Assembly (NCBI GenBank): GCA_977016875.1
Contig: CDRNST010000104.1
Location: 3,286,001-3,350,000, forward strand
Direction of reading: 5' to 3'
From: Pavona decussata
Lineage: Eukaryota
DNA: 64,000 nt
In this document: piece by piece, positions 29,301-51,144 of the stretch
Position numbering within the stretch: the first letter of the stretch is position 1
Layout: the number at the start of each line of letters is the position of its first letter
Notes under the pieces: model-generated
The model's database searches: none
Seen by the model: only the letters and a program-made list of their open reading frames with translations
What the model was told of the DNA's origin: nothing
Translations under genes and position numbers: made by a program

Positions 29301-30343
29301 CCGACAACGGCTAAATAAACAACCGTTGTTGCGTTACCGTGGCAATGAACAGACTAATTTTACATATATCAAAAAAGCGTAATGAAAACGCATTTCTTTT
29401 AATCTTTACATCTTTTTTAATTACAATAAGGAAAAGTCCGGTTTTGGAACCGATTTTTCTCTTTTGCGGTGTGAGATTTTTGCTTATAAAACCATATCTA
29501 GTAAGGACCAGTAAGCGTCTCGATGTCCATTTCTAGAGTTCGCTCAGGTGTCAGATTGCCAATGAAACTGCATCAAAAGGAAATCTGTGGGGTTGAAGTT
29601 CTCCCCTATGGCTATGGTAAAATGCTCGCCGAAATAAAAATTGGAGACCGGTCAAACTTTCCTATTCTGTTTTTAATTCGCTAAATAGTTAGGGTTGCGT
29701 TTTACAAATTCCGAAATCAACAATAATCAGTGAATGTTAAATATCACGCATTGGTGTTTACTAAAGTAAATTGAATTAGTAAAGTTAAAGTAAGATAAAT
29801 CCAATTACGGAAACTTGAAAATTTGTCACTTTAAATTTGGTTTGATATTCTTGTGTTGTCATGGAAGCATGGAGGTGTTCTTTTAGCTCCTTGGTCGTAG
29901 GTCCTTGCTCTTACGACCCCAAACGCTTTCCAAACTATTTTCAGTTTTTCCAAAATCTGTAATTCCGCTAGAAAATAAGATTAATAACCTTTTTTGCGTA
30001 ATCATTCCGCAAAAACTGTATATCTTGATAGAAAAATTCGTGAAGCCATTAATATGTCGCAAAAAGTAACGTTATCTGACGTTTTTGGTGAAAACTAAAC
30101 ACTAAAAGTGACTTTCAAATTTTCTTATTTCTGAGGACGGCAGTTTTTTTACAAATTTGTCTCTATTGAATTTGTTAAAACTTGCGGATAGCGAAAAAAT
30201 GTAATTTTAAGGTATGAAAAGTTCTTCTCTTTTAGCGGATGAGGAAATTCGTTCCTCAGAAACTGATATAATAGGTGATTAATCAGACGTTACCTTTCAA
30301 CCATAAAAAAGGCATTGCCACATGCATAATTTTTCATGCATCA

Positions 30344-30930
30344 AAACCAAGGGTCCGAAATTCGGACCCTTGGTTTCGACTCCGCTAAAATCATCAAAAA
30401 ACAAAATGCTGAATTTATTCAGAAACCAAGGGTCCAAAATTCGGACCCTTGGTTTCGACTCCGCTATTAAAAATCATCAAAAAACACCATGCTAAATTTA
30501 TGTAGAAACCAAGGGTCCGAAATTCGGACCCTTGGTTTCGACTCCGCTAAAATCAGCAAAAAAACACCATGCTAAATTTATGTAGAAACCAAGGGACCGA
30601 AATTCGGACCCTTGGTTTCGACTCCGCTAAAATCATCAAAAAACACCATGCTGATTTCATTCAGAAACCAAGGGTCCGAAATTCGGACCCTTGGATTTGA
30701 CTCCGCTAAAATCATCAAAAAAAAAAAAAAAAAACCATGCTGAATTCATTCAGAAACCAAGGGTCCGAAATTCGGACCCTCGGATTTGACTCCGCCGGCT
30801 AAAATCATCAAAAACACCATGCTGAATTTATTCAGAAACCAAGGGTCTGAAATTCGGACCCTTGGTTTTGACTCCGCTAAAAATCAAAAAACACCATGCT
30901 TAATTTATTTTGGAAAGCAAGGGTCCACAA
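30344..30930. repeat. Left subterminal array: 7 full + 1 degenerate units of about 80 bp, each with hairpin AAACCAAGGGTCCGAAATTCGGACCCTTGGTTT
   Basis: Units start near 30344, 30423, 30506, 30586, 30665, 30754, 30836 and 30917. Confidence 0.92.
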
Positions 30931-31152
30931 ATGTGGAAATACATTAATTTAGAAAGCCGTATTGCTAAATTTGGACCCTCGCATGTGACTTGCCTATCAA
31001 TTCACTAAATACAGGGTGCCTTTTGATTAACGTTATTTGCCATATGATGCAGAATGCCCACTGATTGTTAGATAATTTACTTTCATGAGAATACTAATTC
31101 AAATGTCATCAATAATGCAAAATGTGCTAAGTTCCAATAGAATTAGATTTAA

Positions 31153-32070
31153 TCACTGTGTCCCTGTTAGGTTCTCCTCTCTAGTCTTGTACGCTTTCCT
31201 TAAAAAGGCTTTAGTTCCTGGTAACAATTTGGAATTTTCGTCCAGTGAAAATCCAAAGCACTTGATACAGGTTTTTGGCAGTTGCTGCGTCCAGAGCTGG
31301 TTCTCATTAGACCCTCTGCGTGCAGGAAGTGTGTGTGGCCGCCATTCCTTATTATAAGAGCCCCTCCAGTAACAGATAACGAACCCATCCTCGTTAACTT
31401 CAAAAACCTTTCCAATAACTGGATGCTTGTGATAATTTTCGAGTTCCACTGCAACAAAATCTCCTTCTTGCAGTAGGTCTACATCGACGTTTTCTTGGAC
31501 ATCTTGTGCTCGCCTGGCAGGGTTCAGTTCTGTAAGGGCCTGTGTAAATCTGCCAGCGGTAAAGTAAGAGGAAGTGAAGTTTACATCTTATTTTATCATT
31601 TTTTTTAGTAATAAAAATGTACAGCAACATGATTATTAGACAAAAATCGTTACTTGCAGTCAACGCCATAAATAAATTTGTCTCAATATTTTGCCTCTAT
31701 AACATTGACACGTTATTTAAATTTACCGAGGTAGGTGGTTTTTTTTTATTCTTTTATTTTTGCTTTCTTTTCTATTGCTGTTCCCCTTTCCCATTGAGCG
31801 AGTTAGAACGTAATTCTTCTCCCTGCTTATATCGTATTCTGTGGGTTTTATAAGAGCCGCTACAGAGAGAACACACAGTACGGTTGTTTCGCTTTTCACG
31901 TCACGGAAAACGGAATTTAAGAGAAAAGTGATATCGTGCTTAGAATGTTTAGACTCAATTATTATTGATTATGAATGATATCTACCTCTTCAAGAGGTGC
32001 AGTCTCCTTCTCTCGCAGCTGGGAAATATCATGGCATAATGGGGTTGACAGGCCTACGCGACTCTCATGC
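31153..32070 (-). pseudogene. 3' remnant of a probable transposase gene (exon ending 31986; last exon 31549-31153 with a 1-nt frameshift)
   Basis: ..SQLREKETAPLEE|gtagat ... ggcag|IYTGPYR, frameshift, then DVDLLQEGDFVAVELENYHKHPVIGKVFEV..YWRGSYNKEWRP..WTQQLPKTCIKCFGFSL..TKAFLRKAY*. No catalytic domain is seen. Confidence 0.55.
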
Positions 32071-32542
32071 ATGTGCGTGTTTAGCCTAAATAAGAGTTTT
32101 TCCCTCACGGGTTATGTCTTCCAAAGAATACCCTTTTCTCTATGAAAAGAGCGGTGCTTCCGCTAAAATTTTCTTTCAGCGCTGGATTTTCTTCTTATTA
32201 AATGCCATCTATGATTTGGAGGATTTGCGCGATGAACACTGAGCAAAGCCATGTGTTTAACTGTCGCATGTGTTATAATTGATCTCAAAGGTCATTTTGA
32301 CCTCTTGTTGTTACGTTTCCGTTTAGCGACTGTCGTTCTTATGCCTTTGTGGCATTTAGTTTAGGCTTGGTATGGCTCATTTCAGTGCGTCTGGTGACAG
32401 TATAGCCTCTCTTTTTGTCGTTGTAAGGATAGGATTTGAACCGTGTAATAACTATACATTATCTTGCAGCTTTTGTCAGATTACCGGGCCCGGCTATTTG
32501 CTTTTGTTGCAAGATGCTGTGCTTCTTATCACGGTTATTTGT

Positions 32543-33037
32543 GCTTATAGAGCTGGCTATCCAACTAAACCAAGAATTTTGAAATAAAATGAATTGCCGA
32601 ATTTTTAGCGCTGTTTTCTCGAATAATTTTTTTTCACTTGGAGGAGCCACTTCAAATTTGTTCGTTTGCCTTAAAAAAAATTTGGACAGTGGCTAGTGTA
32701 AACAACAAAAACGTGTCTGCGAATTTTTTCATTCGAAATATTTTTTCTCCGAGAGAGATTTTTGTACGATTACTCCACATTTTTTTCATCCTATTTCGAA
32801 AATGCTCTATAACTTTTCACTGCGATTGAATATGGCAAAACGCAGACACGTTTTTTTTAGCGCTTTGGGTCCGGAAACTGAGGAGCAAATTTTAAAAATT
32901 AGCAAAAAACAAAATTCACTTTGACTTGTAGATTTAAAAAAGGTGATTCGGACGCTCGCAATTAGAGGTCGTGAAAAATTCGACAATTCATTTTATTTCA
33001 AAGTTCTTGGTATAGTTTGATAGCCAGGTCTATAAGC
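32543..33037. mobile_element. Foldback/MITE insertion inside the transposon (also 43267-43761)
   Basis: About 65-bp imperfect inverted repeat GCTTATAGAGCTGGCTATCCAACTAAACCAAGAATTTTGAAATAAAATGAATTGCCGAATTTTT. Confidence 0.7.
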
Positions 33038-34344
33038 TTTAATTTGATATGGGGGTTTAGGTATCTACAGTTTAAACTGGACGCGCTAGATTGCTTAAAC
33101 GCGAAACACCTCTGAAGGTACCGGGTAACCTTAGTAGTAACAATTATAGACTTATCATTCTTGCTAACACACACAGATAATGTTTTTGTTTGTTGTTTGA
33201 AATGTTGGTGGCCAAGTCATTAAATAAGGTAGGGAGGATTCCGAGCGGTAATTGTAAAAGATGTTGTTGTTTCCTGCCGCAATAAACTTTGGCGGCGCGG
33301 AAAACAACTAACGGAAAACCACCGGCGTTTGCGGCGGGCTATTTGAATAGCTGCCCTAATTAATTTTATCTGTTAGAATTCTTGCCAAATATTCTTAAGC
33401 TCTCCCTTTGTCGTCAAATCAGTTATTATCATAGACTGTTTTTTTTTTGTCATACAATCGAGTGCCTCGATTCATTTATTGATAAAAGAGGCTAATCATG
33501 AAATAAACGACATATTTTGCCAGACAGAGGCAGCAAGCGCTGACTGATCAGCAGTTATCAAATTTAAACGGTGCGAGTGTACATTATACTCAAACACGGA
33601 AAGGCCTGCAGTAAACTCAAAATGAGCACAGTTTTGCTATTCTCGTAGATGACGGCCACGCCGGCTACTCAATTTTGTTAAATTAAAGTACTGATACGCG
33701 CTTGTAACACCATCTTGAAGAAATCAGGAGCGATTTCCTACCAGAAGTTTAATTACGTTCAGGATGAGAGATAGTTAGCCAGGGCAGAGTTACTCTTGTT
33801 TCCTTTATTTGTTTTTGTTTTTGTTTTTTTGTTTGTTTTTTTTTCCCCTCTTTGCGTCTTTCACTATACTTCTAGAGCGATTCGTACATAGCTTCTGTTT
33901 ATTGTTTTCTCTTAAGCAGTTATTGTTTGCGTCAACATGAATCCTGAATCGCTATACTGAGCAAAACTAGAGAAATATGATTTTACCAACTCACACGTAC
34001 GAGAAGAACTCAGTTTTCCTTGATCCCCGCTATTACTATCATCAAACCCAATTGCGTGCTCGCTCCCTAACAAAAAAAAAATGAATAAAAAAAGGAAAAA
34101 AAAATCAAATTAATGAAATGAAACAGTTACAAGAATAAAGCTCAACGTATTTAAAATTTTCTACAGAGTGTATACAAATACTTCATCCTGGATTTGAAGC
34201 ACTCGACATGAAACATGCTAAGAGTGAACATGATTAAATAAAAGAAAGATCCTATTAATTCAATTTATTCTTTCATCTGCAGTTTAAATATATGTTTTAT
34301 ATATTCATTTTCCTTTATTCATACTTCAAGTTTTTATTAAGAAA

Positions 34345-34392
34345 TCTGCAGCTCCCAGATGGCTTGACAGCTCAGTTGGTAGAGCATTGGGA
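34345..34392 (+). repeat. tRNA-derived repeat fragment (also about 45069-45116)
   Basis: GGCTTGACAGCTCAGTTGGTAGAGCA is a D-arm/A-box only; there is no T-arm. Confidence 0.5.
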
Positions 34393-34674
34393 GGGTCTTC
34401 TATTTAATCTGTCATCCGCAGTTCAAATTTATGTTCCATATATTCATAATGAGTAAAAACGATGTACGATGGAGGTGCAGAACTGGTTTTATCTTATAAT
34501 ATATTTTTATAGGATAATTTCTTTTATTCCATACAAACTAGCGTTTTGAGGTATAAAAAGAGTACTCTATAAAGATAGCCGGGACAGAGAATAGAAAACT
34601 CACTTATTCCGTAATGTGGAAACAAATTTAATGAACTTCATGACAGACTATAGAGACAAATGCAAAACACATAC

Positions 34675-35914
34675 CGGGATATGATGATGACCTGGAGGAG
34701 TCACTGGCGTCATCAAATCCTATTGCATGCATTTCTGCTACAGAACAAATATTTCAGTAACAAATTCATTGAAAAAAACTCAAGAATTTATTTGTACTGA
34801 CGTTAGTCCTGTTTTAAATTAAAGCTTTACTATGAACACAAACCACGCGAATGCGTAATTGTATAATTTGAAATTTCAAAAATGCGGTGCCAATCTCCTG
34901 CTCCGCACGCATGTTACACTCAAAGAACTGTTTATCGTTTGTGTCAAATAGAAATAAATTTTGCGAGACAACTCAAGGCATAAATCCTAATCCAATCATG
35001 GTCTACAGTGCTTTTAACTCCCTCAAAAAATAAATAAAATAAAATAAAGTAAAAAATGGAAGGGTATATATACCGGACTGTGTATTTGGTATTGATGAGT
35101 CCCGGCTGGAGTCATCGAACCCAATGGCATACTCATTTTCTGAAATAAACAACTGCACTTTAGTTTAAGGGTAACTCAAGACGATTCAAGACTATCCTCT
35201 TTTAAAACTGAAATGAATACACTGTTTTGTTTAGTAAGTAAACAACATTTTAATTTTGACCAAATGTTTTGAAAATGAACGCATTGAATACGAATAAAAT
35301 AATATACTCGGAAAATTTTAAGGCTAACAATAAGCCAAATGAAGGTTATCGTGGTCAAGCCCGCATAGATTTATTGAAATACCGTACTATAGCAGGTAAG
35401 AGAACTTTACAGGCTCAAATTGCCCCAAAAATATTTAAATAAGAATTAGAAGCGCTCAGCCTTAGGCCCAAAATTAGGCGTTCTTACAAACAAAAAAAGA
35501 GTGTATTATAGTTACAGCATTAAATGAAAGGACAAAGATCACGATGCTACATAGTTACCAGATTTAACAGGAGAGCACGTTTTACTGGTTCCTTCTAATC
35601 CAACGGCACATATATCCTCTAAAATTGAAGTCAGTGTCAAGAACAAATTTTGATGTGAGAACATAGTTGTACGTTAATTAAGAGAATTCAAAGCGTTCTT
35701 GTCCCAATATAAGAAAACTTAAGCCAACAAGAAGTCATCAGATTAATAATGATTGAACCTTACCGTCGTCTTGAAAGAAAGTGCTACTTTCCACATTCAA
35801 GCATCTTCTGAAAGAGCAAGTAGCTGTTTCTGGAGCTTCTCTAATTCCCTTATTCACTGGCTCTTCCTTGAAAGGAGACGGGAAAGAACTTCTCGTATCC
35901 GAGTCTTCATCCAT
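34675..35914 (-). CDS. Transposon-borne micro-exon gene of unknown function; exons 35914-35764, 35618-35559, 35139-35074, 34737-34675; 3' end unresolved
   Basis: Three consecutive phase-1 exons of 60, 66 and 63 bp with canonical AG/GT. They encode related motifs EDICAVGLEGTS, ENEYAIGFDDSS and AEMHAIGFDDAS. Confidence 0.6.
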
Positions 35915-36405
35915 GATGAAAAGAAGCTGCCGCGTGGACCTCTAATAAGTCATTTTGTTGAGCAGCCGTTTTGGCAGCAAACTGTAACTGCTTTTTTGGT
36001 ATTCAACAAACGTAAATTTGGTTACTCTTTTTCCGGCCACATCCGGTAGCACTGCGCCCGCGGGCCTTACAGAAAGGCTCGGTTGTCAATAATCCTGCCG
36101 CGAATAGCGACCGCATTCGCTTCCGTTCAGTGCTCTAGAAAAAGATAAAGACTGCTGCGGTCAACTGAAACCACGACAAAAAAGAAAAAAATGTTTGTGG
36201 CAAACGTGTTATGTCAAGATATAAAAGCATGAGGTTCCTGAACTTTTGTCCATTGGCCACCGCCCAATTTAGTGTAGAGCATTTTTGATCGACGGCCAAG
36301 TTAATTTGCAGATCCTACCCCCGGTTGACGAAACTGAGATCAGTATAGCTCGACAACACTTCATTCGCGATCGGTTAGCAGAAGATCACAAAAACGAGAA
36401 TAACA

Positions 36406-39400
36406 ATGCCCGAAACTTCAGTATGGTCCGATCGAAGGAGAAGATGTTTTTATTTACCTCGGTAAAGATAGACTGAAGTTGCAACAAGTTTATGGGAAAG
36501 TCTTGAGTGTTGAGAAATCCACATATAAGGGAGCGACTACCTTACAGGTAAGGACCTACCTCTTTCAGTTATATGGCAGTAATTATTCAACTGCATGCTC
36601 CTTGTCTCATGTTTGCAATTTTTTGACAAAAGTAAGAGCCTATGTGATTTGTGTTTTGTAGTTCCGTTTTGAGCCATGCCCAAAAGGATCTCATACAAAG
36701 TGCCATTTGAAACTTAAATATTTCAACCGCCATAACAGCGATGGAAATTTCAAGAAAATAGTAAAGGAGACCAGTCATGACGAATGGGTATTGCGATTCA
36801 ATCAGGAAATCGAAAGGTTGAACTCCGTGAGCCGTACCGCTACCACTGCTGTAAATCAAGTTATCCAAAAACGAGAGAGGTCTCCATGAGCGCACGCGGC
36901 TGCGAAGATAATGAAGGTGACACTTCGTTGAACACATCTTCGGACAGAAGTTTAAGTTTACGTGAAAGCACCGATCTGGAAATCACCCACATAACAGGAG
37001 AGGCCAGCTTATCAGGTATGAAAACAAAAATATTATTAAGAACATCAAGAAGGCGAAACCCTTCCCATTTCTATCGGAATTACAAAGTGACATCATTATT
37101 TTAATCTTCGAGACAGTATAGTGCCATATAAAATAAAAATAACGGGACTTTTTGATCACATTTAAGATGCTATTAACAATTATTTAGAAAGACTTAGCAA
37201 AGGCTCTGAAAGAAGTCAAATTTCTGGATGTTTTGCGTTGCTGCCATGGAACTACACCGAGTGAAATTTTTCTGTGTTCACACGAAAGAATCGGAGGCAT
37301 CTTAAAAATGTGTTATCTGTTATAACAGATAACTCCTATCCTGTCAGATGACTGATGAACAGTCTAAACGAAATCCAGGCTGAAAATTTGAAAGTTAACG
37401 TCACGGCTATTAGGCTACTGGTTGCGAAAATGGAATGTGGGGGAAAAATGGAAAAGTTGCGAATACATCAAACAAGTCAAAGAAATTTCGCTCGATTGTA
37501 TAGTTCAGTTTGTCCTCGGCTATACAACAGGAAAAAATTGCTTTCCACGGACTTTTTTTTTATTTTGTTTAATGATTTTGGCACATGTCTGTTATGGAGT
37601 TATCCGGCAGGGAACACTAGCCAGCCAATTAACTGCTTTCTTGCTGTTAGAAAAAGAAGGGGGGCACCGCCTTTTCGATACTCGTTCTTTTTGAATGAAG
37701 ACGTAGCGCTTCCTTTTGATCGAAAAAAAAAAATGGTCGTTTTGGTAGGACAACAAATGGTGCAACAGTCCTTCCGGTTTCCTTTCCACTGGATTTTTTT
37801 GTGAAAAAAAAGGAATAATTGCAAACGGATTCCTCTTTCTCGTTCTTGCCGAAATAAACGGAATATCACCGAACCATTTGCCTCATCACACTTACGTACC
37901 ATGCTCCTTGGTGAGTTACGCGCTTTTTTCCCAAAATTTCCAGTGGAAAGAACCGTTCCATTTGATTCCCCAACGGAACTACTGTTTTTTTTCATATAAA
38001 ATGAAAAGCACTTGAGAATTGTACTGTTACATTTGGCGGAAATTAAATTTTCACCGGTTATTCCTTGCAAATAGAGAGCGCTCACGGGAAATGTACGATA
38101 AAACATAGTTGCTGTAAACCTGGTTTAAAGGGCGCAAAACATAGGGGTGAGCGGTCTCTTCTCGACTGATTTGTCACATTTGCAATCAAAATCCTTTACT
38201 TTTAGTGGAGAACAGTAATTACAGTCATTTCCTGTACTTTAATATGTGGTCAACCAAGGTTAATGAGGTAAAAAAAAAAAAAGCCGAAAAGCCAGCAGCC
38301 AGACCCGAAGAACAAATTGGATAAAAGATAATTTAGATGTTAACATGAGTTTGGTTAGTCTCCCACGCGACTGGGAATTTGTCTCGATGAACGTTGGGTG
38401 ACGAGACAAAGAACTGCAACGTGGGAGACAAGGGAATAGTTTTGCAGTAAACATAGATGTCGAATGGGTTGAACTGGCTTTGCCTTATAAGTTTGCAAAC
38501 AAAACGCATCCTGTAAATCAGACATGATCCTAGAGATGACTACTTACACAGGAAATTTCTTATCTCTTTTAGCCGATCACACCAGCTGCGGTGGAAATGA
38601 AGATCCTCTCGCCTGTTCTTCTCCAGTGGCAACTGCGCAGACAAGTCGTAAAAGAAAAACTCTCGAAATCTCGCCAATACACCGTATTCCGAGTAAACGA
38701 AGAGATAAAGCGAGCGACAGCGAAGAAGAAGCCACTAGCGATGGACAGTTCGCTGAAATGCAGAAAAGATGTGAAGAATGTCGAGTCGAGGGTAAATAAA
38801 TTTCACTGTTACTGTCAACCTTTGCGTGCCTGAAGTAAAAAAAATCAAGAAAATAAAAATGCTTATAGCCGAACACAACACAGCAAGCCTTTTAAACGGC
38901 AACGTATACTCCGGAAAAGCTAGGCTTGACTCTACATTATGCGAGCAGTTTTAGTGTCGAGGCAGAAGCATAAAGCATTTAACGAGGCATTTCTCCGACA
39001 AAAATATTTGTTAGTGACTTTTGTAATAGACCGATCTTTTTAATGAGAATGAAAAGCACAATGTGTAAAAGCCTCAGTAGAAACAGGCTTGTTTTAATAG
39101 TTCTAACAGTTTTAATATTTCATTTCAGGAATTCATTTCTTACTAATAGAAAAGCTGCAAACCCCGAGAGATGAAATCCTCATTAGGAAAATTGATTCAA
39201 TTTTCCTAGAAAAGCTCCAGAAGGACATGGAAATGGAACCTGAAGTACGAGTGGATCGTCAACCATTTTAGTCGCTCTGGTGATTATGTGGTAGATCTTT
39301 TTTCGCATAATGCGGCTGCAATAGTTGCAACTATGCAGAGTGGCAGAAATGGCTTATATTTCGGTAAAGAGGAGGTGCAGGAAAACGTAAAATTCCACCT

Positions 39401-39473
39401 GGCTTCCAAAGTCCAGCCTCGTAAAGCCCAGGAAGGAAAAAATAAACCCGGTTCCTCTACGAGAAACTCATAA
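36406..39473 (+). pseudogene. Transposon-borne spliced gene with a ParB-like segment and a beta-class N4/N6 DNA methyltransferase-like C-terminus; exons 36406-36547, 36662-37015, 38573-38791, 39129-39473
   Basis: Canonical splice sites; 1-nt frameshifts in exons 1 and 2. Exon 4 reads GIHFLLIEKLQTPRDEILIRKIDSIFLEKLQKDMEMEPE and then, in another frame, YEWIVNHFSRSGDYVVDLFSHNAAAIVATMQSGRNGLYFG. Confidence 0.6.
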
Positions 39474-39856
39474 ACAGCATTAGAATTTTTTATAGACGCC
39501 GGTGGTACAAAGGGTGAATATATAAGGGTGGTCTGTTTGATAAATTATTATCGATTGAAGTACGCAAATCATTTTGATAGAAATTTTTTTGTAATTAAAT
39601 GACTTATCCTTATTCATCCTTTGAACAACTGGAAACAGTTTTTTTCCCTTAAAGAGTAGAGTTATTAAATGTTGCAGAATCACCTCTTATAAATAGTGTG
39701 TCAAGTAACCCTGCAATTTTGTTGACGGATAGCACTGAACTCACTTTTCATCGTAAGCACAAGTCATTTAAAAGAGATTTGAGGTTTGGCTTAAGGCAAT
39801 TGTTCTATCTTCGGAGTTGAAGCGTTTTGTTTTTACAATAGATTTTTTAATCGAAG

Positions 39857-40420
39857 CAAGGGTCCGAATTTCGGACCCCTAGACTTAAAGTAAATTGTTT
39901 TGAAAAACGCATTTTCTGCGGATTTAGTTGAACCAAGGGTCCGAATTTCGGACCCCTAGACTTAAAGTAAATTGTTTTGAAAAACGCATTTTCTGCGGAT
40001 TTAGTTGAATCAAGGGTCCGAATTTCGGACCCCTAGACTGAAAGTGAAGAATTTTTAACAACGCATTTTCTGCGGATTTAGTTGAGCCAAGGGTCCGAAT
40101 TTCGAACCCCTGGAATTAAAATGAATTATTTTTAAAAACGCATTTTCTGCGGATTTAGTTGAACCAAGGGTCCGAATTTCGGACCCCTGGAATTAAAGTG
40201 AATTATTTTTAAAAACGCATTTTCTGCGGATTTAGTTGAACCAAGGGTCCGAGTTTCGGACCCCTGGAATTAAAGTGAATTATTTTTAAAAACGCACTTT
40301 CTGCGGATTTAGTTGAGCCAAGGGTCCGAATTTCGGACCCCTGGAATTAAAGTGAATTATTTTTAAAAACGCACTTTCTGCGGATTTAGTTGAACCAAGG
40401 GTCCGAATTTCGGACCCCTT
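39857..40420. repeat. Right subterminal array: 8 units, 77-bp period, hairpin CAAGGGTCCGAATTTCGGACCCC (inverted relative to the left array)
   Basis: Units at 39857, 39934, 40011, 40088, 40165, 40242, 40319 and 40396. Confidence 0.92.
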
Positions 40421-41067
40421 GATTTAGACAAATAAGACTTAAGATTACTTAAATGGCTAATTTGTGAGGACAATAAAAATCACTCCGCTGAAAAGAAGTT
40501 TTCTTGATGTGTTAACTTTTTACTCCGTAGGAATCGACAAAAACTTAACTTTAAAAATTCATCTCCGCACAAATAGCATAAAAATGACACTTTCTTTGGA
40601 AAATTGAAACTTTGGAAAAACTGAAAATAGTTTGGAAAGCGTTCAAACGCTTTCCAAACTATTTTCAGTTTTTCCAAAATCTGTAATTCCGCTAGAAAAT
40701 AAGATTAATAACCTTTTTTGCGTAATCATTCCGCAAAAACTGTATATCTTGATAGAAAAATTCGTGAAGCCATTAATATGTCGCAAAAAGTAACGTTATC
40801 TGACGTTTTTGGTGAAAACTAAACACTAAAAGTGACTTTCAAATTTTCTTATTTCTGAGGACGGCAGTTTTTTTACAAATTTGTCTCTATTGAATTTGTT
40901 AAAACTTGCGGATAGCGAAAAAATGTAATTTTAAGGTATGAAAAGTTCTTCTCTTTTAGCGGATGAGGAAATTCGTTCCTCAGAAACTGATATAATAGGT
41001 GATTAATCAGACGTTACCTTTCAACCATAAAAAAGGCATTGCCACATGCATAATTTTTCATGCATCA

Positions 41068-41654
41068 AAACCAAGGGTCCGAAATTCGGACCCTTGGTTT
41101 CGACTCCGCTAAAATCATCAAAAAACAAAATGCTGAATTTATTCAGAAACCAAGGGTCCAAAATTCGGACCCTTGGTTTCGACTCCGCTATTAAAAATCA
41201 TCAAAAAACACCATGCTAAATTTATGTAGAAACCAAGGGTCCGAAATTCGGACCCTTGGTTTCGACTCCGCTAAAATCAGCAAAAAAACACCATGCTAAA
41301 TTTATGTAGAAACCAAGGGACCGAAATTCGGACCCTTGGTTTCGACTCCGCTAAAATCATCAAAAAACACCATGCTGATTTCATTCAGAAACCAAGGGTC
41401 CGAAATTCGGACCCTTGGATTTGACTCCGCTAAAATCATCAAAAAAAAAAAAAAAAAACCATGCTGAATTCATTCAGAAACCAAGGGTCCGAAATTCGGA
41501 CCCTCGGATTTGACTCCGCCGGCTAAAATCATCAAAAACACCATGCTGAATTTATTCAGAAACCAAGGGTCTGAAATTCGGACCCTTGGTTTTGACTCCG
41601 CTAAAAATCAAAAAACACCATGCTTAATTTATTTTGGAAAGCAAGGGTCCACAA
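41068..41654. repeat. Left subterminal hairpin array, copy 2
   Basis: Same as 30344-30930. Confidence 0.9.
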
Positions 41655-41876
41655 ATGTGGAAATACATTAATTTAGAAAGCCGTATTGCTAAATTTGGAC
41701 CCTCGCATGTGACTTGCCTATCAATTCACTAAATACAGGGTGCCTTTTGATTAACGTTATTTGCCATATGATGCAGAATGCCCACTGATTGTTAGATAAT
41801 TTACTTTCATGAGAATACTAATTCAAATGTCATCAATAATGCAAAATGTGCTAAGTTCCAATAGAATTAGATTTAA

Positions 41877-42794
41877 TCACTGTGTCCCTGTTAGGTTCTC
41901 CTCTCTAGTCTTGTACGCTTTCCTTAAAAAGGCTTTAGTTCCTGGTAACAATTTGGAATTTTCGTCCAGTGAAAATCCAAAGCACTTGATACAGGTTTTT
42001 GGCAGTTGCTGCGTCCAGAGCTGGTTCTCATTAGACCCTCTGCGTGCAGGAAGTGTGTGTGGCCGCCATTCCTTATTATAAGAGCCCCTCCAGTAACAGA
42101 TAACGAACCCATCCTCGTTAACTTCAAAAACCTTTCCAATAACTGGATGCTTGTGATAATTTTCGAGTTCCACTGCAACAAAATCTCCTTCTTGCAGTAG
42201 GTCTACATCGACGTTTTCTTGGACATCTTGTGCTCGCCTGGCAGGGTTCAGTTCTGTAAGGGCCTGTGTAAATCTGCCAGCGGTAAAGTAAGAGGAAGTG
42301 AAGTTTACATCTTATTTTATCATTTTTTTTAGTAATAAAAATGTACAGCAACATGATTATTAGACAAAAATCGTTACTTGCAGTCAACGCCATAAATAAA
42401 TTTGTCTCAATATTTTGCCTCTATAACATTGACACGTTATTTAAATTTACCGAGGTAGGTGGTTTTTTTTTATTCTTTTATTTTTGCTTTCTTTTCTATT
42501 GCTGTTCCCCTTTCCCATTGAGCGAGTTAGAACGTAATTCTTCTCCCTGCTTATATCGTATTCTGTGGGTTTTATAAGAGCCGCTACAGAGAGAACACAC
42601 AGTACGGTTGTTTCGCTTTTCACGTCACGGAAAACGGAATTTAAGAGAAAAGTGATATCGTGCTTAGAATGTTTAGACTCAATTATTATTGATTATGAAT
42701 GATATCTACCTCTTCAAGAGGTGCAGTCTCCTTCTCTCGCAGCTGGGAAATATCATGGCATAATGGGGTTGACAGGCCTACGCGACTCTCATGC
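41877..42794 (-). pseudogene. Probable transposase 3' remnant, copy 2
   Basis: Same as 31153-32070. Confidence 0.55.
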
Positions 42795-45398
42795 ATGTGC
42801 GTGTTTAGCCTAAATAAGAGTTTTTCCCTCACGGGTTATGTCTTCCAAAGAATACCCTTTTCTCTATGAAAAGAGCGGTGCTTCCGCTAAAATTTTCTTT
42901 CAGCGCTGGATTTTCTTCTTATTAAATGCCATCTATGATTTGGAGGATTTGCGCGATGAACACTGAGCAAAGCCATGTGTTTAACTGTCGCATGTGTTAT
43001 AATTGATCTCAAAGGTCATTTTGACCTCTTGTTGTTACGTTTCCGTTTAGCGACTGTCGTTCTTATGCCTTTGTGGCATTTAGTTTAGGCTTGGTATGGC
43101 TCATTTCAGTGCGTCTGGTGACAGTATAGCCTCTCTTTTTGTCGTTGTAAGGATAGGATTTGAACCGTGTAATAACTATACATTATCTTGCAGCTTTTGT
43201 CAGATTACCGGGCCCGGCTATTTGCTTTTGTTGCAAGATGCTGTGCTTCTTATCACGGTTATTTGTGCTTATAGAGCTGGCTATCCAACTAAACCAAGAA
43301 TTTTGAAATAAAATGAATTGCCGAATTTTTAGCGCTGTTTTCTCGAATAATTTTTTTTCACTTGGAGGAGCCACTTCAAATTTGTTCGTTTGCCTTAAAA
43401 AAAATTTGGACAGTGGCTAGTGTAAACAACAAAAACGTGTCTGCGAATTTTTTCATTCGAAATATTTTTTCTCCGAGAGAGATTTTTGTACGATTACTCC
43501 ACATTTTTTTCATCCTATTTCGAAAATGCTCTATAACTTTTCACTGCGATTGAATATGGCAAAACGCAGACACGTTTTTTTTAGCGCTTTGGGTCCGGAA
43601 ACTGAGGAGCAAATTTTAAAAATTAGCAAAAAACAAAATTCACTTTGACTTGTAGATTTAAAAAAGGTGATTCGGACGCTCGCAATTAGAGGTCGTGAAA
43701 AATTCGACAATTCATTTTATTTCAAAGTTCTTGGTATAGTTTGATAGCCAGGTCTATAAGCTTTAATTTGATATGGGGGTTTAGGTATCTACAGTTTAAA
43801 CTGGACGCGCTAGATTGCTTAAACGCGAAACACCTCTGAAGGTACCGGGTAACCTTAGTAGTAACAATTATAGACTTATCATTCTTGCTAACACACACAG
43901 ATAATGTTTTTGTTTGTTGTTTGAAATGTTGGTGGCCAAGTCATTAAATAAGGTAGGGAGGATTCCGAGCGGTAATTGTAAAAGATGTTGTTGTTTCCTG
44001 CCGCAATAAACTTTGGCGGCGCGGAAAACAACTAACGGAAAACCACCGGCGTTTGCGGCGGGCTATTTGAATAGCTGCCCTAATTAATTTTATCTGTTAG
44101 AATTCTTGCCAAATATTCTTAAGCTCTCCCTTTGTCGTCAAATCAGTTATTATCATAGACTGTTTTTTTTTTGTCATACAATCGAGTGCCTCGATTCATT
44201 TATTGATAAAAGAGGCTAATCATGAAATAAACGACATATTTTGCCAGACAGAGGCAGCAAGCGCTGACTGATCAGCAGTTATCAAATTTAAACGGTGCGA
44301 GTGTACATTATACTCAAACACGGAAAGGCCTGCAGTAAACTCAAAATGAGCACAGTTTTGCTATTCTCGTAGATGACGGCCACGCCGGCTACTCAATTTT
44401 GTTAAATTAAAGTACTGATACGCGCTTGTAACACCATCTTGAAGAAATCAGGAGCGATTTCCTACCAGAAGTTTAATTACGTTCAGGATGAGAGATAGTT
44501 AGCCAGGGCAGAGTTACTCTTGTTTCCTTTATTTGTTTTTGTTTTTGTTTTTTTGTTTGTTTTTTTTTCCCCTCTTTGCGTCTTTCACTATACTTCTAGA
44601 GCGATTCGTACATAGCTTCTGTTTATTGTTTTCTCTTAAGCAGTTATTGTTTGCGTCAACATGAATCCTGAATCGCTATACTGAGCAAAACTAGAGAAAT
44701 ATGATTTTACCAACTCACACGTACGAGAAGAACTCAGTTTTCCTTGATCCCCGCTATTACTATCATCAAACCCAATTGCGTGCTCGCTCCCTAACAAAAA
44801 AAAAATGAATAAAAAAAGGAAAAAAAAATCAAATTAATGAAATGAAACAGTTACAAGAATAAAGCTCAACGTATTTAAAATTTTCTACAGAGTGTATACA
44901 AATACTTCATCCTGGATTTGAAGCACTCGACATGAAACATGCTAAGAGTGAACATGATTAAATAAAAGAAAGATCCTATTAATTCAATTTATTCTTTCAT
45001 CTGCAGTTTAAATATATGTTTTATATATTCATTTTCCTTTATTCATACTTCAAGTTTTTATTAAGAAATCTGCAGCTCCCAGATGGCTTGACAGCTCAGT
45101 TGGTAGAGCATTGGGAGGGTCTTCTATTTAATCTGTCATCCGCAGTTCAAATTTATGTTCCATATATTCATAATGAGTAAAAACGATGTACGATGGAGGT
45201 GCAGAACTGGTTTTATCTTATAATATATTTTTATAGGATAATTTCTTTTATTCCATACAAACTAGCGTTTTGAGGTATAAAAAGAGTACTCTATAAAGAT
45301 AGCCGGGACAGAGAATAGAAAACTCACTTATTCCGTAATGTGGAAACAAATTTAATGAACTTCATGACAGACTATAGAGACAAATGCAAAACACATAC

Positions 45399-46638
45399 CG
45401 GGATATGATGATGACCTGGAGGAGTCACTGGCGTCATCAAATCCTATTGCATGCATTTCTGCTACAGAACAAATATTTCAGTAACAAATTCATTGAAAAA
45501 AACTCAAGAATTTATTTGTACTGACGTTAGTCCTGTTTTAAATTAAAGCTTTACTATGAACACAAACCACGCGAATGCGTAATTGTATAATTTGAAATTT
45601 CAAAAATGCGGTGCCAATCTCCTGCTCCGCACGCATGTTACACTCAAAGAACTGTTTATCGTTTGTGTCAAATAGAAATAAATTTTGCGAGACAACTCAA
45701 GGCATAAATCCTAATCCAATCATGGTCTACAGTGCTTTTAACTCCCTCAAAAAATAAATAAAATAAAATAAAGTAAAAAATGGAAGGGTATATATACCGG
45801 ACTGTGTATTTGGTATTGATGAGTCCCGGCTGGAGTCATCGAACCCAATGGCATACTCATTTTCTGAAATAAACAACTGCACTTTAGTTTAAGGGTAACT
45901 CAAGACGATTCAAGACTATCCTCTTTTAAAACTGAAATGAATACACTGTTTTGTTTAGTAAGTAAACAACATTTTAATTTTGACCAAATGTTTTGAAAAT
46001 GAACGCATTGAATACGAATAAAATAATATACTCGGAAAATTTTAAGGCTAACAATAAGCCAAATGAAGGTTATCGTGGTCAAGCCCGCATAGATTTATTG
46101 AAATACCGTACTATAGCAGGTAAGAGAACTTTACAGGCTCAAATTGCCCCAAAAATATTTAAATAAGAATTAGAAGCGCTCAGCCTTAGGCCCAAAATTA
46201 GGCGTTCTTACAAACAAAAAAAGAGTGTATTATAGTTACAGCATTAAATGAAAGGACAAAGATCACGATGCTACATAGTTACCAGATTTAACAGGAGAGC
46301 ACGTTTTACTGGTTCCTTCTAATCCAACGGCACATATATCCTCTAAAATTGAAGTCAGTGTCAAGAACAAATTTTGATGTGAGAACATAGTTGTACGTTA
46401 ATTAAGAGAATTCAAAGCGTTCTTGTCCCAATATAAGAAAACTTAAGCCAACAAGAAGTCATCAGATTAATAATGATTGAACCTTACCGTCGTCTTGAAA
46501 GAAAGTGCTACTTTCCACATTCAAGCATCTTCTGAAAGAGCAAGTAGCTGTTTCTGGAGCTTCTCTAATTCCCTTATTCACTGGCTCTTCCTTGAAAGGA
46601 GACGGGAAAGAACTTCTCGTATCCGAGTCTTCATCCAT
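45399..46638 (-). CDS. Micro-exon gene, copy 2
   Basis: Same as 34675-35914. Confidence 0.6.
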
Positions 46639-47129
46639 GATGAAAAGAAGCTGCCGCGTGGACCTCTAATAAGTCATTTTGTTGAGCAGCCGTTTTGGCA
46701 GCAAACTGTAACTGCTTTTTTGGTATTCAACAAACGTAAATTTGGTTACTCTTTTTCCGGCCACATCCGGTAGCACTGCGCCCGCGGGCCTTACAGAAAG
46801 GCTCGGTTGTCAATAATCCTGCCGCGAATAGCGACCGCATTCGCTTCCGTTCAGTGCTCTAGAAAAAGATAAAGACTGCTGCGGTCAACTGAAACCACGA
46901 CAAAAAAGAAAAAAATGTTTGTGGCAAACGTGTTATGTCAAGATATAAAAGCATGAGGTTCCTGAACTTTTGTCCATTGGCCACCGCCCAATTTAGTGTA
47001 GAGCATTTTTGATCGACGGCCAAGTTAATTTGCAGATCCTACCCCCGGTTGACGAAACTGAGATCAGTATAGCTCGACAACACTTCATTCGCGATCGGTT
47101 AGCAGAAGATCACAAAAACGAGAATAACA

Positions 47130-50100
47130 ATGCCCGAAACTTCAGTATGGTCCGATCGAAGGAGAAGATGTTTTTATTTACCTCGGTAAAGATAGACTGA
47201 AGTTGCAACAAGTTTATGGGAAAGTCTTGAGTGTTGAGAAATCCACATATAAGGGAGCGACTACCTTACAGGTAAGGACCTACCTCTTTCAGTTATATGG
47301 CAGTAATTATTCAACTGCATGCTCCTTGTCTCATGTTTGCAATTTTTTGACAAAAGTAAGAGCCTATGTGATTTGTGTTTTGTAGTTCCGTTTTGAGCCA
47401 TGCCCAAAAGGATCTCATACAAAGTGCCATTTGAAACTTAAATATTTCAACCGCCATAACAGCGATGGAAATTTCAAGAAAATAGTAAAGGAGACCAGTC
47501 ATGACGAATGGGTATTGCGATTCAATCAGGAAATCGAAAGGTTGAACTCCGTGAGCCGTACCGCTACCACTGCTGTAAATCAAGTTATCCAAAAACGAGA
47601 GAGGTCTCCATGAGCGCACGCGGCTGCGAAGATAATGAAGGTGACACTTCGTTGAACACATCTTCGGACAGAAGTTTAAGTTTACGTGAAAGCACCGATC
47701 TGGAAATCACCCACATAACAGGAGAGGCCAGCTTATCAGGTATGAAAACAAAAATATTATTAAGAACATCAAGAAGGCGAAACCCTTCCCATTTCTATCG
47801 GAATTACAAAGTGACATCATTATTTTAATCTTCGAGACAGTATAGTGCCATATAAAATAAAAATAACGGGACTTTTTGATCACATTTAAGATGCTATTAA
47901 CAATTATTTAGAAAGACTTAGCAAAGGCTCTGAAAGAAGTCAAATTTCTGGATGTTTTGCGTTGCTGCCATGGAACTACACCGAGTGAAATTTTTCTGTG
48001 TTCACACGAAAGAATCGGAGGCATCTTAAAAATGTGTTATCTGTTATAACAGATAACTCCTATCCTGTCAGATGACTGATGAACAGTCTAAACGAAATCC
48101 AGGCTGAAAATTTGAAAGTTAACGTCACGGCTATTAGGCTACTGGTTGCGAAAATGGAATGTGGGGGAAAAATGGAAAAGTTGCGAATACATCAAACAAG
48201 TCAAAGAAATTTCGCTCGATTGTATAGTTCAGTTTGTCCTCGGCTATACAACAGGAAAAAATTGCTTTCCACGGACTTTTTTTTTATTTTGTTTAATGAT
48301 TTTGGCACATGTCTGTTATGGAGTTATCCGGCAGGGAACACTAGCCAGCCAATTAACTGCTTTCTTGCTGTTAGAAAAAGAAGGGGGGCACCGCCTTTTC
48401 GATACTCGTTCTTTTTGAATGAAGACGTAGCGCTTCCTTTTGATCGAAAAAAAAAAATGGTCGTTTTGGTAGGACAACAAATGGTGCAACAGTCCTTCCG
48501 GTTTCCTTTCCACTGGATTTTTTTGTGAAAAAAAAGGAATAATTGCAAACGGATTCCTCTTTCTCGTTCTTGCCGAAATAAACGGAATATCACCGAACCA
48601 TTTGCCTCATCACACTTACGTACCATGCTCCTTGGTGAGTTACGCGCTTTTTTCCCAAAATTTCCAGTGGAAAGAACCGTTCCATTTGATTCCCCAACGG
48701 AACTACTGTTTTTTTTCATATAAAATGAAAAGCACTTGAGAATTGTACTGTTACATTTGGCGGAAATTAAATTTTCACCGGTTATTCCTTGCAAATAGAG
48801 AGCGCTCACGGGAAATGTACGATAAAACATAGTTGCTGTAAACCTGGTTTAAAGGGCGCAAAACATAGGGGTGAGCGGTCTCTTCTCGACTGATTTGTCA
48901 CATTTGCAATCAAAATCCTTTACTTTTAGTGGAGAACAGTAATTACAGTCATTTCCTGTACTTTAATATGTGGTCAACCAAGGTTAATGAGGTAAAAAAA
49001 AAAAAAGCCGAAAAGCCAGCAGCCAGACCCGAAGAACAAATTGGATAAAAGATAATTTAGATGTTAACATGAGTTTGGTTAGTCTCCCACGCGACTGGGA
49101 ATTTGTCTCGATGAACGTTGGGTGACGAGACAAAGAACTGCAACGTGGGAGACAAGGGAATAGTTTTGCAGTAAACATAGATGTCGAATGGGTTGAACTG
49201 GCTTTGCCTTATAAGTTTGCAAACAAAACGCATCCTGTAAATCAGACATGATCCTAGAGATGACTACTTACACAGGAAATTTCTTATCTCTTTTAGCCGA
49301 TCACACCAGCTGCGGTGGAAATGAAGATCCTCTCGCCTGTTCTTCTCCAGTGGCAACTGCGCAGACAAGTCGTAAAAGAAAAACTCTCGAAATCTCGCCA
49401 ATACACCGTATTCCGAGTAAACGAAGAGATAAAGCGAGCGACAGCGAAGAAGAAGCCACTAGCGATGGACAGTTCGCTGAAATGCAGAAAAGATGTGAAG
49501 AATGTCGAGTCGAGGGTAAATAAATTTCACTGTTACTGTCAACCTTTGCGTGCCTGAAGTAAAAAAAATCAAGAAAATAAAAATGCTTATAGCCGAACAC
49601 AACACAGCAAGCCTTTTAAACGGCAACGTATACTCCGGAAAAGCTAGGCTTGACTCTACATTATGCGAGCAGTTTTAGTGTCGAGGCAGAAGCATAAAGC
49701 ATTTAACGAGGCATTTCTCCGACAAAAATATTTGTTAGTGACTTTTGTAATAGACCGATCTTTTTAATGAGAATGAAAAGCACAATGTGTAAAAGCCTCA
49801 GTAGAAACAGGCTTGTTTTAATAGTTCTAACAGTTTTAATATTTCATTTCAGGAATTCATTTCTTACTAATAGAAAAGCTGCAAACCCCGAGAGATGAAA
49901 TCCTCATTAGGAAAATTGATTCAATTTTCCTAGAAAAGCTCCAGAAGGACATGGAAATGGAACCTGAAGTACGAGTGGATCGTCAACCATTTTAGTCGCT
50001 CTGGTGATTATGTGGTAGATCTTTTTTCGCATAATGCGGCTGCAATAGTTGCAACTATGCAGAGTGGCAGAAATGGCTTATATTTCGGTAAAGAGGAGGT

Positions 50101-50197
50101 GCAGGAAAACGTAAAATTCCACCTGGCTTCCAAAGTCCAGCCTCGTAAAGCCCAGGAAGGAAAAAATAAACCCGGTTCCTCTACGAGAAACTCATAA
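47130..50197 (+). pseudogene. ParB-like/methyltransferase-like decayed gene, copy 2
   Basis: Same as 36406-39473. Confidence 0.6.
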
Positions 50198-50580
50198 ACA
50201 GCATTAGAATTTTTTATAGACGCCGGTGGTACAAAGGGTGAATATATAAGGGTGGTCTGTTTGATAAATTATTATCGATTGAAGTACGCAAATCATTTTG
50301 ATAGAAATTTTTTTGTAATTAAATGACTTATCCTTATTCATCCTTTGAACAACTGGAAACAGTTTTTTTCCCTTAAAGAGTAGAGTTATTAAATGTTGCA
50401 GAATCACCTCTTATAAATAGTGTGTCAAGTAACCCTGCAATTTTGTTGACGGATAGCACTGAACTCACTTTTCATCGTAAGCACAAGTCATTTAAAAGAG
50501 ATTTGAGGTTTGGCTTAAGGCAATTGTTCTATCTTCGGAGTTGAAGCGTTTTGTTTTTACAATAGATTTTTTAATCGAAG

Positions 50581-51144
50581 CAAGGGTCCGAATTTCGGAC
50601 CCCTAGACTTAAAGTAAATTGTTTTGAAAAACGCATTTTCTGCGGATTTAGTTGAACCAAGGGTCCGAATTTCGGACCCCTAGACTTAAAGTAAATTGTT
50701 TTGAAAAACGCATTTTCTGCGGATTTAGTTGAATCAAGGGTCCGAATTTCGGACCCCTAGACTGAAAGTGAAGAATTTTTAACAACGCATTTTCTGCGGA
50801 TTTAGTTGAGCCAAGGGTCCGAATTTCGAACCCCTGGAATTAAAATGAATTATTTTTAAAAACGCATTTTCTGCGGATTTAGTTGAACCAAGGGTCCGAA
50901 TTTCGGACCCCTGGAATTAAAGTGAATTATTTTTAAAAACGCATTTTCTGCGGATTTAGTTGAACCAAGGGTCCGAGTTTCGGACCCCTGGAATTAAAGT
51001 GAATTATTTTTAAAAACGCACTTTCTGCGGATTTAGTTGAGCCAAGGGTCCGAATTTCGGACCCCTGGAATTAAAGTGAATTATTTTTAAAAACGCACTT
51101 TCTGCGGATTTAGTTGAACCAAGGGTCCGAATTTCGGACCCCTT
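50581..51144. repeat. Right subterminal hairpin array, copy 2
   Basis: Same as 39857-40420. Confidence 0.9.

Follow-up and report, generated by a model that had tools for sequence, protein, structure and literature searches.

The window analyzed here, a 64,000-nt stretch of the genome of the coral Pavona decussata, contains a DNA element bounded by terminal inverted repeats (TIRs) and present in two adjacent copies, each of which carries a gene on the plus strand. In the first copy, the gene occupies positions 36406 to 39473. It is probably a transcribed and spliced, broken copy of a conserved coral TIR-transposon gene, whose last exon is related to beta-class DNA methylases and whose fourth exon encodes a module that a sequence-only reading of the locus had called ParB-like, a name kept below in quotation marks. 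The parts of the gene in the first element copy are as follows.

36404-36547, plus strand: open coding part of exon 1 (..YGPIEGEDVFIYLGKDRLKL..TTLQ), with a donor joint at 36547 and a homologous exon in L077-L079.
36662-37015, plus strand: exon 2 (FRFEPCPKGSHTKCHLKLKYFNRHNSDG..), both joints taken from contigs.
38573-38791, plus strand: exon 3, an acidic/basic linker (..RKRKTLEISPIHRIPSKRRDK..) delimited by its joints, with homologues P0036-P0038 and also found in L084 and L090.
39129-39271, plus strand: translated part of exon 4, (G)IHFLLIEKLQTPRDEILIRKIDSIFLEKLQKDMEMEPE followed by VRVDRQPF and a stop at 39269-39271.
39131-39244, plus strand: remnant of the 'ParB-like' module, the first 38 of ~125 residues (IHF and 35 residues common to seven copies and L084).
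39245|39246: deletion junction, placed by a break of homology and a diverging contig, the G at 39245 being assignable to either side.
39246-39473, plus strand: methylase-like remnant of the last exon, with the motif X helix, a degenerate motif I (FSHNAAA) and the next strand.

Contigs of four runs were aligned to positions 34800-39900, and the splice joints were read from runs X1 and X2. The contigs of these two runs gave GT..AG joints at 36547|36662, 37015|38573 and 38791|39129, resulting in four exons, and the element ends were read from the sequence, so that the four-exon gene inside a TIR element proposed by the sequence-only reading is upheld. Parts of the window stretch are also contained in coral metatranscriptome runs. 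Translation of exon 1 revealed no in-frame ATG downstream of the stop at 36401-36403. Exon 2 of the window copy carries a 1-nt indel near 36856 that breaks its frame and leads to a stop at 36887-36889; the 147-residue frame of this exon is intact in the C19, C248 and C239 copies, and the contigs have one extra G behind 36856. The phase inherited from exon 3 (..CEECRVE|G) sets exon 4 in the 'ParB-like' frame. Both peptides on which the sequence-only reading relied are present, YEWIVNHFSRSGDYVVDLFSHNAAAIVATMQSGRNGLYFG read from 39246 and KLQTPRDEILIRKIDSIFLEKLQKDMEMEP in the frame of 39128, but the supposed translation of the first one did not hold, as it lies one base out of frame with exon 4, which stops at 39269-39271. 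Because of the splice phase and this stop, the methylase-like stretch is untranslated here and belongs to the 3' untranslated region. The deletion described below, the frameshift in exon 2 and the lack of an in-frame ATG in exon 1 indicate that the gene copy of the window is dead.

The last exon was found at 11 genomic places, 7 of which have the same arrangement as the window with ~96% identity across the whole interior. At C214, C11 and C90, similarity to the window is lost exactly at 39245-39250, and in C214 and C11 the open frame runs on upstream (..FILDPFLLSKSFTCYLVGHWHISRKLVQEHFVFRKDEPRDGFVQVAADKSGKLPTAAYEWIV..). An X1 contig covering 39245-39647 bears the same non-window upstream sequence as well, with a loose end at 39245. 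The exon-3 homologue P0037 (89%) led to contigs L084-L088 of another coral, which have an intact exon 4; in L084, this exon reads GNYGLSYVLVKNC..YEYEVIGGLHNMTAAKAL..RVYCGLRNEEALWLASRHN.. beyond ..MEMEPE. When the intact L084 exon was used in tblastn, all 7 copies of the window form stopped matching at ..MEMEPE. On contig L090, from the Joint Genome Institute (JGI), exon 3, the full exon 4, two middle exons, two further exons and the full last exon follow each other on one strand, with ~3.8 kb between the two sides of the junction (~1396 to ~5170). The full last exon of intact relatives holds YEWIV-type sequence, and a partly spliced contig from a related lineage, L095, shows the same order from the 'ParB-like' exon onward. 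Since homology among copies breaks at the shared point 39245/39246 and relatives (L084 and L090) contain the missing middle, we conclude that the gene was internally deleted, in agreement with the sequence-only reading. That reading had also expected a (D/S)PPY motif in the missing part; the middle exons were indeed found in relatives, but neither the motif nor a catalytic half was.

Through a deletion of ~3.8 kb, the 'ParB-like' exon would thus have been broken at its codon 35 (counting from L084:1507) and fused to the middle part of the last exon. The fusion would have been one base out of frame, stopping the message nine codons on, and the deletion form would afterwards have transposed to at least six places. 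A second deletion derivative of the same TIR family, L076, comes from a third coral and has kept exon 2 and the methylase-like exons, exons 3 and 4 being missing. The window copy itself serves as a pointer only, and shows that deletion derivatives stay spliced and are mobilised.

The intact gene of the relatives has at least nine exons. It begins with an N-terminal region (exons 1 and 2) and a charged linker resembling a nuclear localization signal (exon 3), followed by a module of ~125 residues (exon 4) with the signature YEYEV(L/I)GGxH...GL(T/R)(D/N)E(E/Q)AL..HN. After exon 4 come a helical middle region, two exons of no assigned kind and the last exon. Elsewhere in the genome, at C98, C282, C24 and C78, and at L075 in another coral, a diverged exon-4 paralogue (36-40% identity) is followed on its strand, 4-6 kb downstream, by a diverged paralogue of the last exon. 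The pairing of the 'ParB-like' and methylase-like modules is old.

To what does the last exon correspond? Pfam gave no match for any of the five exon translations of the window at expectation values (E) up to 10, and the genome-wide search with PF01555 returned one weak match and none above threshold. Together with an empty genome search for PF02195, such results would be expected if the motif resemblance was due to chance and the region was untranslated sequence internal to the transposon, an explanation to which we give almost no credence in view of its relatives. An exhaustive protein search collected 26 proteins, mostly short open frames, which share the pattern HW.ISRK...P..AY.W(L/I)V.H(F/L)SR.GD.V.D(L/V)....; the long repeat proteins P0013, P0020 and P0025 among them were discarded as low-complexity artefacts. 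One bridging protein, P0021, keeps QKP..GDYIMDLFSGSGST and matches PF01555 at 3.9e-17. Other family members stay below the cut-off of 26.7 bits, with scores of 14.7-21.8, their matches all falling on profile positions 163-214, and PF01555 is the sole or best Pfam match, under the threshold, for several of them. Comparison of the family alignment A1 with six PF01555 proteins by hhalign gave a probability of 97.2% (E 3.1e-11) over 49 columns. The two best PDB matches of the A1 profile, M.RsrI (E 0.016) and TTHA0409 (E 0.16), fall in the motif X/motif I region, and the best PHROG and NCBIfam matches of the family are DNA methyltransferases. A single-sequence PDB search with the C11 exon gave chance matches only. 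The AlphaFold model of the last exon is poor, with a predicted local distance difference test (pLDDT) of 54, and shows the expected helix-strand-helix-strand-helix order of the tail; Foldseek with this low-confidence model returned nothing significant, TTHA0409 and the bdelloid methylase N4CMT appearing only at E above 3.

The protein-coding relatives of the last exon are conserved down to ~25-30% identity, and the ratio of nonsynonymous to synonymous substitution (dN/dS) in this exon is 0.12-0.32 between element lineages. For the exon-4 module, dN ranges from 0.16 to 0.56 and dS was estimable in 1 of 21 pairs, with a dN/dS of 0.07 there. By these values, purifying selection acts on both modules between lineages. 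Conserved coding relatives, a profile specific to methylases and selection at the protein level all speak against chance, and the hhalign match and selection refute a chance resemblance for the methylase-like exon. The beta-class relation put forward from the sequence is therefore supported, and the final ~50 conserved residues of the last exon would derive from the end of a beta-class methylase that binds S-adenosylmethionine (AdoMet), comprising motif X, motif I and the next strand.

Motif I itself does not read F.G.G but FSHNAAA in the window and C214, FSQNAAA in L076, FSENASA in L074 and FSEKASA in L090. The degeneracy noticed in the window (FSHNA) thus holds across the whole subfamily. 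Distant subfamilies partly keep the loop, as DSSSGSA (P0017-P0019, P0022 and L095) or RSGNGR (L012). Separately, L012 (G000:C195:2843335-2843427) is a methylase-like paralogue with the near-canonical loop GDVILDIRSGNGR and a frameshift between its GHW and motif X/I parts. We looked by hhalign for a catalytic half or a motif IV of the (D/N/S)PP(Y/F/W) type in the upstream exons A3 and A4 and in the 170-residue L095 stretch and obtained probabilities below 1%, the shallow alignments limiting the power of this search. The stretches 'LENS..LFF.EPF' and 'FDPIY' of the upstream exons, considered as a degenerate motif IV, had no hhalign support and were dropped.

An alternative, raised by the sequence-only reading, is that the intact protein would be an active amino-methylase with a ParB-type targeting domain, marking the DNA of the element with N6-methyladenine (6mA) or N4-methylcytosine (4mC). 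The C-terminal module seems to be truly derived from a methylase, judged by the hhalign probability and the M.RsrI and TTHA0409 matches, it is under purifying selection, glycine/serine-rich loops persist in distant subfamilies, and bdelloid N4CMT provides a precedent (PMC8885841). However, the subfamily carries FSHNAAA, FSENASA or FSQNAAA as motif I, no DPPY-type motif or catalytic half was found even in the naturally spliced 170-residue stretch of L095, and no member of the family reaches the Pfam cut-off, so that we consider such an activity improbable. Most likely, then, the intact protein does not work as a methylase: the subfamily has lost the glycines of motif I, and a catalytic half could not be detected. 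The low dN/dS values indicate that both modules are maintained as protein despite the loss of the cofactor motif, which suggests recruitment for a non-enzymatic role, probably one concerned with the ends of the element itself. The importance of the family would lie there, in a methylase-derived module and a conserved upstream module that are kept under purifying selection in a diversified coral transposon family.

The element that carries the gene has the following features in the window.

29922-40643, plus strand: TIR element copy 1, 10.7 kb, from self-comparison and ends read directly.
40646-51367: TIR element copy 2, with the two letters CA (40644-40645) between copy 1 and copy 2.
29922-29954, plus strand: left terminal inverted repeat, AACGCTTTCCAAACTATTTTCAGTTTTTCCAAA, 33 nt and perfect, read directly.
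40611-40643, minus strand: right terminal inverted repeat, read directly.
30341-30925: left subterminal palindrome array with the core GGGTCCGAAATTCGGACCC, from repeat analysis and sequence.
39769-40530: right subterminal array of 77-nt units (family D1) with a palindrome of the same kind, from repeat analysis and sequence.
47130-50197, plus strand: second, identical gene copy, every coordinate being increased by 10724 and the junction lying at 49969|49970.

Self-comparison of the window showed that 29920-40644 and 40644-51368 are 100% identical over 10,725 bases and arranged head-to-tail. CCCA is found on both outer flanks of the dimer, giving one outer duplication for two copies. The identical copies joined by CA could have arisen by a very recent head-to-tail duplication or could reflect an error of the assembly. 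The C214 copy and L076 have ends that match the left TIR, and a right end resembling that of the window was found in L074. In L074, the gene is followed by a palindrome array comparable to that of the window and by the right TIR, indicating that the gene is inside the element; in L076, which has palindromes at its left end, the gene is enclosed by the left TIR and the 3' region. Homologous genes are therefore linked to these TIRs in other corals, as the sequence-only reading required. No host parent gene was found for the interior (31300-39250), whose matches are confined to element copies, apart from two nested repeats. One of these (32030-32542) is a ~510-nt unit of which the genome has dozens of ~95% copies, including tandem ones on C46 and C129; the other (32543-33133), of ~590 nt, has inverted ends of 64 nt each, the arms lying at 32543-32606 and 32974-33037. 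The segment 37859-38000, deeply covered in the coral metatranscriptome run X12, flanked by loose ends and placed where homology to L076 stops, is probably another dispersed repeat.

Other open frames accompany the gene. In the left-end region, a minus-strand frame at 31156-31587 encodes 144 residues (..LQEGDFVAVELENYHKHPVIGKVFEVNEDGFVICYWRGSYNKEWRP..) that are 77-86% conserved in L076; this frame looks SH3/chromo-like by eye and had no Pfam match. A divergent spliced gene runs on the minus strand from 35914 down to ~34900, opposite to the plus-strand gene. Its exon 1 contains MDEDSDTRSSFPSPFKEEPVNKG, its introns are canonical (35138-35765, or alternatively 35140-35558), and its next exon reads ENEYAIGFDDSSRD.., a motif that recurs at ~34060 (..EHAIGFDDSNSGD..). 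Contigs of this divergent gene extend to 36448 and overlap exon 1 of the plus-strand gene. In L076, from another coral, a 903-residue open frame (16999-19707) lies ~4 kb past the last methylase-like exon and shows a recombination endonuclease VII motif (PF02945, 24.4 bits, slightly above the cut-off).

Taken together, we hold it probable that the window contains a spliced, broken copy of a conserved coral transposon gene, that its deletion form was mobilised, and that the intact protein would be a non-catalytic accessory. This protein could be a DNA-binding factor for which the palindrome arrays near the two ends of the element serve as recognition sites. Several points weigh against this explanation. 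The RNA label of runs X1-X3 is a guess; it is the spliced contigs that argue for RNA. A transposase-like open reading frame was found neither in 30900-36100 nor in the readable flanks of relatives, where small spliced exons could escape detection, and the window copy is probably non-autonomous. The region upstream of the methylase-like tail is unlike methylases, and of the methylase fold the protein may have retained no more than a fragment. Binding to the palindrome arrays near the element ends, the natural candidate sites, is putative. Finally, the ParB/Srx assignment of the exon-4 module obtained no match to PF02195 or its clan among Pfam, NCBIfam, PHROG or PDB sequences with up to 10 members, and the AlphaFold model of this module from two sequences (pLDDT 37.9) was unusable.

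The identity of the exon-4 module was studied on a 10-member alignment (35-75% identity) built from 13 loci of a JGI metagenome scan. Its invariant positions include P12, R19, YE.EV.GG.H and ..Y..L...........H. In ParB proteins, box II is an arginine-rich, GxRRxRA-type motif that follows the central strand. The exon-4 motif YEYEV(L/I)GG(L/T)H.(M/T/L) has no arginine, so box II is not present. No solved ParB structure was matched when the exon-4 family profile was compared with the PDB, and tblastn of the module against phages and plasmids gave only matches with E above 0.8. Over the core, the best phage match (E 6) was a Mycobacterium phage protein, Rinkes gp1, which carries the annotation ParB-like nuclease domain protein; hhalign of the exon-4 module with it gave 79.7%, and Rinkes gp1 itself has no Pfam ParB match. 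The ParB/Srx identity given to the upstream module in the sequence-only reading was thus not borne out by profile hidden Markov models (HMMs), and what speaks for it are the comparison with Rinkes gp1 and language-model neighbours.

These neighbours were obtained from the Atlas for two diverged members (L084:1498-1884 and L097:2252-2632) and are leads, not alignments. DUF3723 ranked first, with 0.94-0.95 and 175-186 shared features. Clusters of ParB_N followed for the same two members at 0.94 with 147-149 features, behind fungal DUF3723 and alongside phage DUF6551. Taking both kinds of evidence into account, we give a ParB-like nature of the module slightly less than an even chance. Alternatively, the module could be a domain of eukaryotic mobile elements with fungal DUF3723 as its relative, its likeness to ParB being superficial. 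The order of the Atlas neighbours for the two diverged members, the lack of a ParB HMM match among 10 members and a GGxH motif without the arginines of ParB box II are all in line with it. This relation is nevertheless doubtful, since Pfam gave no DUF3723 match either and the neighbours are leads only; moreover, the DUF3723 and ParB readings are not mutually exclusive.

Among the named language-model neighbours, DUF3723 (PF12520) of fungal Starship elements comes closest to the coral module, as judged from the two members. It is a conserved non-transposase accessory gene of these elements, with an unexplained function (PMC9156397). Both it and the coral gene are conserved genes of eukaryotic mobile elements that do not encode a transposase; DUF3723 differs by belonging to another kingdom and another element type, and by the absence of an HMM match with the coral module. 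We note a possible deep link, via the DUF3723 neighbours, between animal and fungal mobile-element accessory genes. In a literature search of limited reach, no paper linking DUF3723 to ParB was found. Look-alike clusters of the language model occur in Mollusca and Porifera, and the family itself was found in corals.

A more specific and rather unlikely proposal is that the coral proteins form an undescribed animal-transposon family in which an ancient module, akin to ParB or DUF3723, would have been retained alongside what remains of the AdoMet-binding part of a phage-type beta-class methylase, the two acting as a non-catalytic end-binding factor that reads the palindromes as ParB reads parS. 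If true, the ParB-methylase modules of phages and plasmids would have a counterpart in eukaryotic transposons, possibly akin to the Starship gene DUF3723.

Among known systems, Sola elements generate 4-bp target duplications, and the window element resembles these DNA transposons by its TIRs and by the 4-bp CCCA duplication present at the dimer, a feature that is not unique to Sola. It differs from them in that no transposase was found in the window element or its relatives. With beta-class methylases (PF01555, M.RsrI and TTHA0409), the motif X helix, the strand and loop of motif I and the next helix and strand align without gaps, the coral P..AY.W(L/I)V.H(F/L)SR.GD.V.D(L/V)...... corresponding to the methylase PVELL..LI.....GD.VLD.F.GSG(S/T)TA.AA. 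In contrast to these enzymes, the coral family is recognisable over ~50 residues only, with a degenerate motif I, no motif IV found and no coral member at the Pfam cut-off, and its gene is intron-bearing and located in an animal transposon.

To our knowledge, animals are considered to have practically no beta-class amino-methylase domains, bdelloid N4CMT excepted. N4CMT is likewise an animal, intron-containing gene with a PF01555-type domain, and was stated to have no eukaryotic homologues as a PF01555 enzyme (PMC8885841). It is one gene of the host, with a chromodomain beside its intact, active domain (PMC8885841), whereas the coral family is multicopy, transposon-borne and motif-degenerate.

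A further parallel is with the phage and bacterial ParB-methylase fusions and ParB-terminase loci, as described in passages of a review of eukaryotic adenine methylases (PMC4738411). The order is the same, with a putative ParB-like module upstream and a beta-class-derived C-terminus in one protein, and, as far as these passages go, the coral gene and the phage and bacterial loci share a setting on mobile elements with palindrome arrays. The differences are the ~3 kb of other exons between the coral modules, the far divergence of both modules with loss of the catalytic motifs, and the putative nature of the ParB identity. In the same passages, ParB-linked methylases of eukaryotes are mentioned only for haptophytes, chlorophytes and chytrids, with no animal or transposon-borne case (PMC4738411). 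Our literature search, limited in reach, found neither a ParB-methylase transposon in animals nor a description of such a family, for which no Pfam model was found either. The coral family is a new, intron-bearing, motif-degenerate and transposon-borne variant of the ParB-methylase theme, and is a manageable example in which to study how a eukaryotic mobile element domesticates a DNA-modification gene of prokaryotic or phage type.

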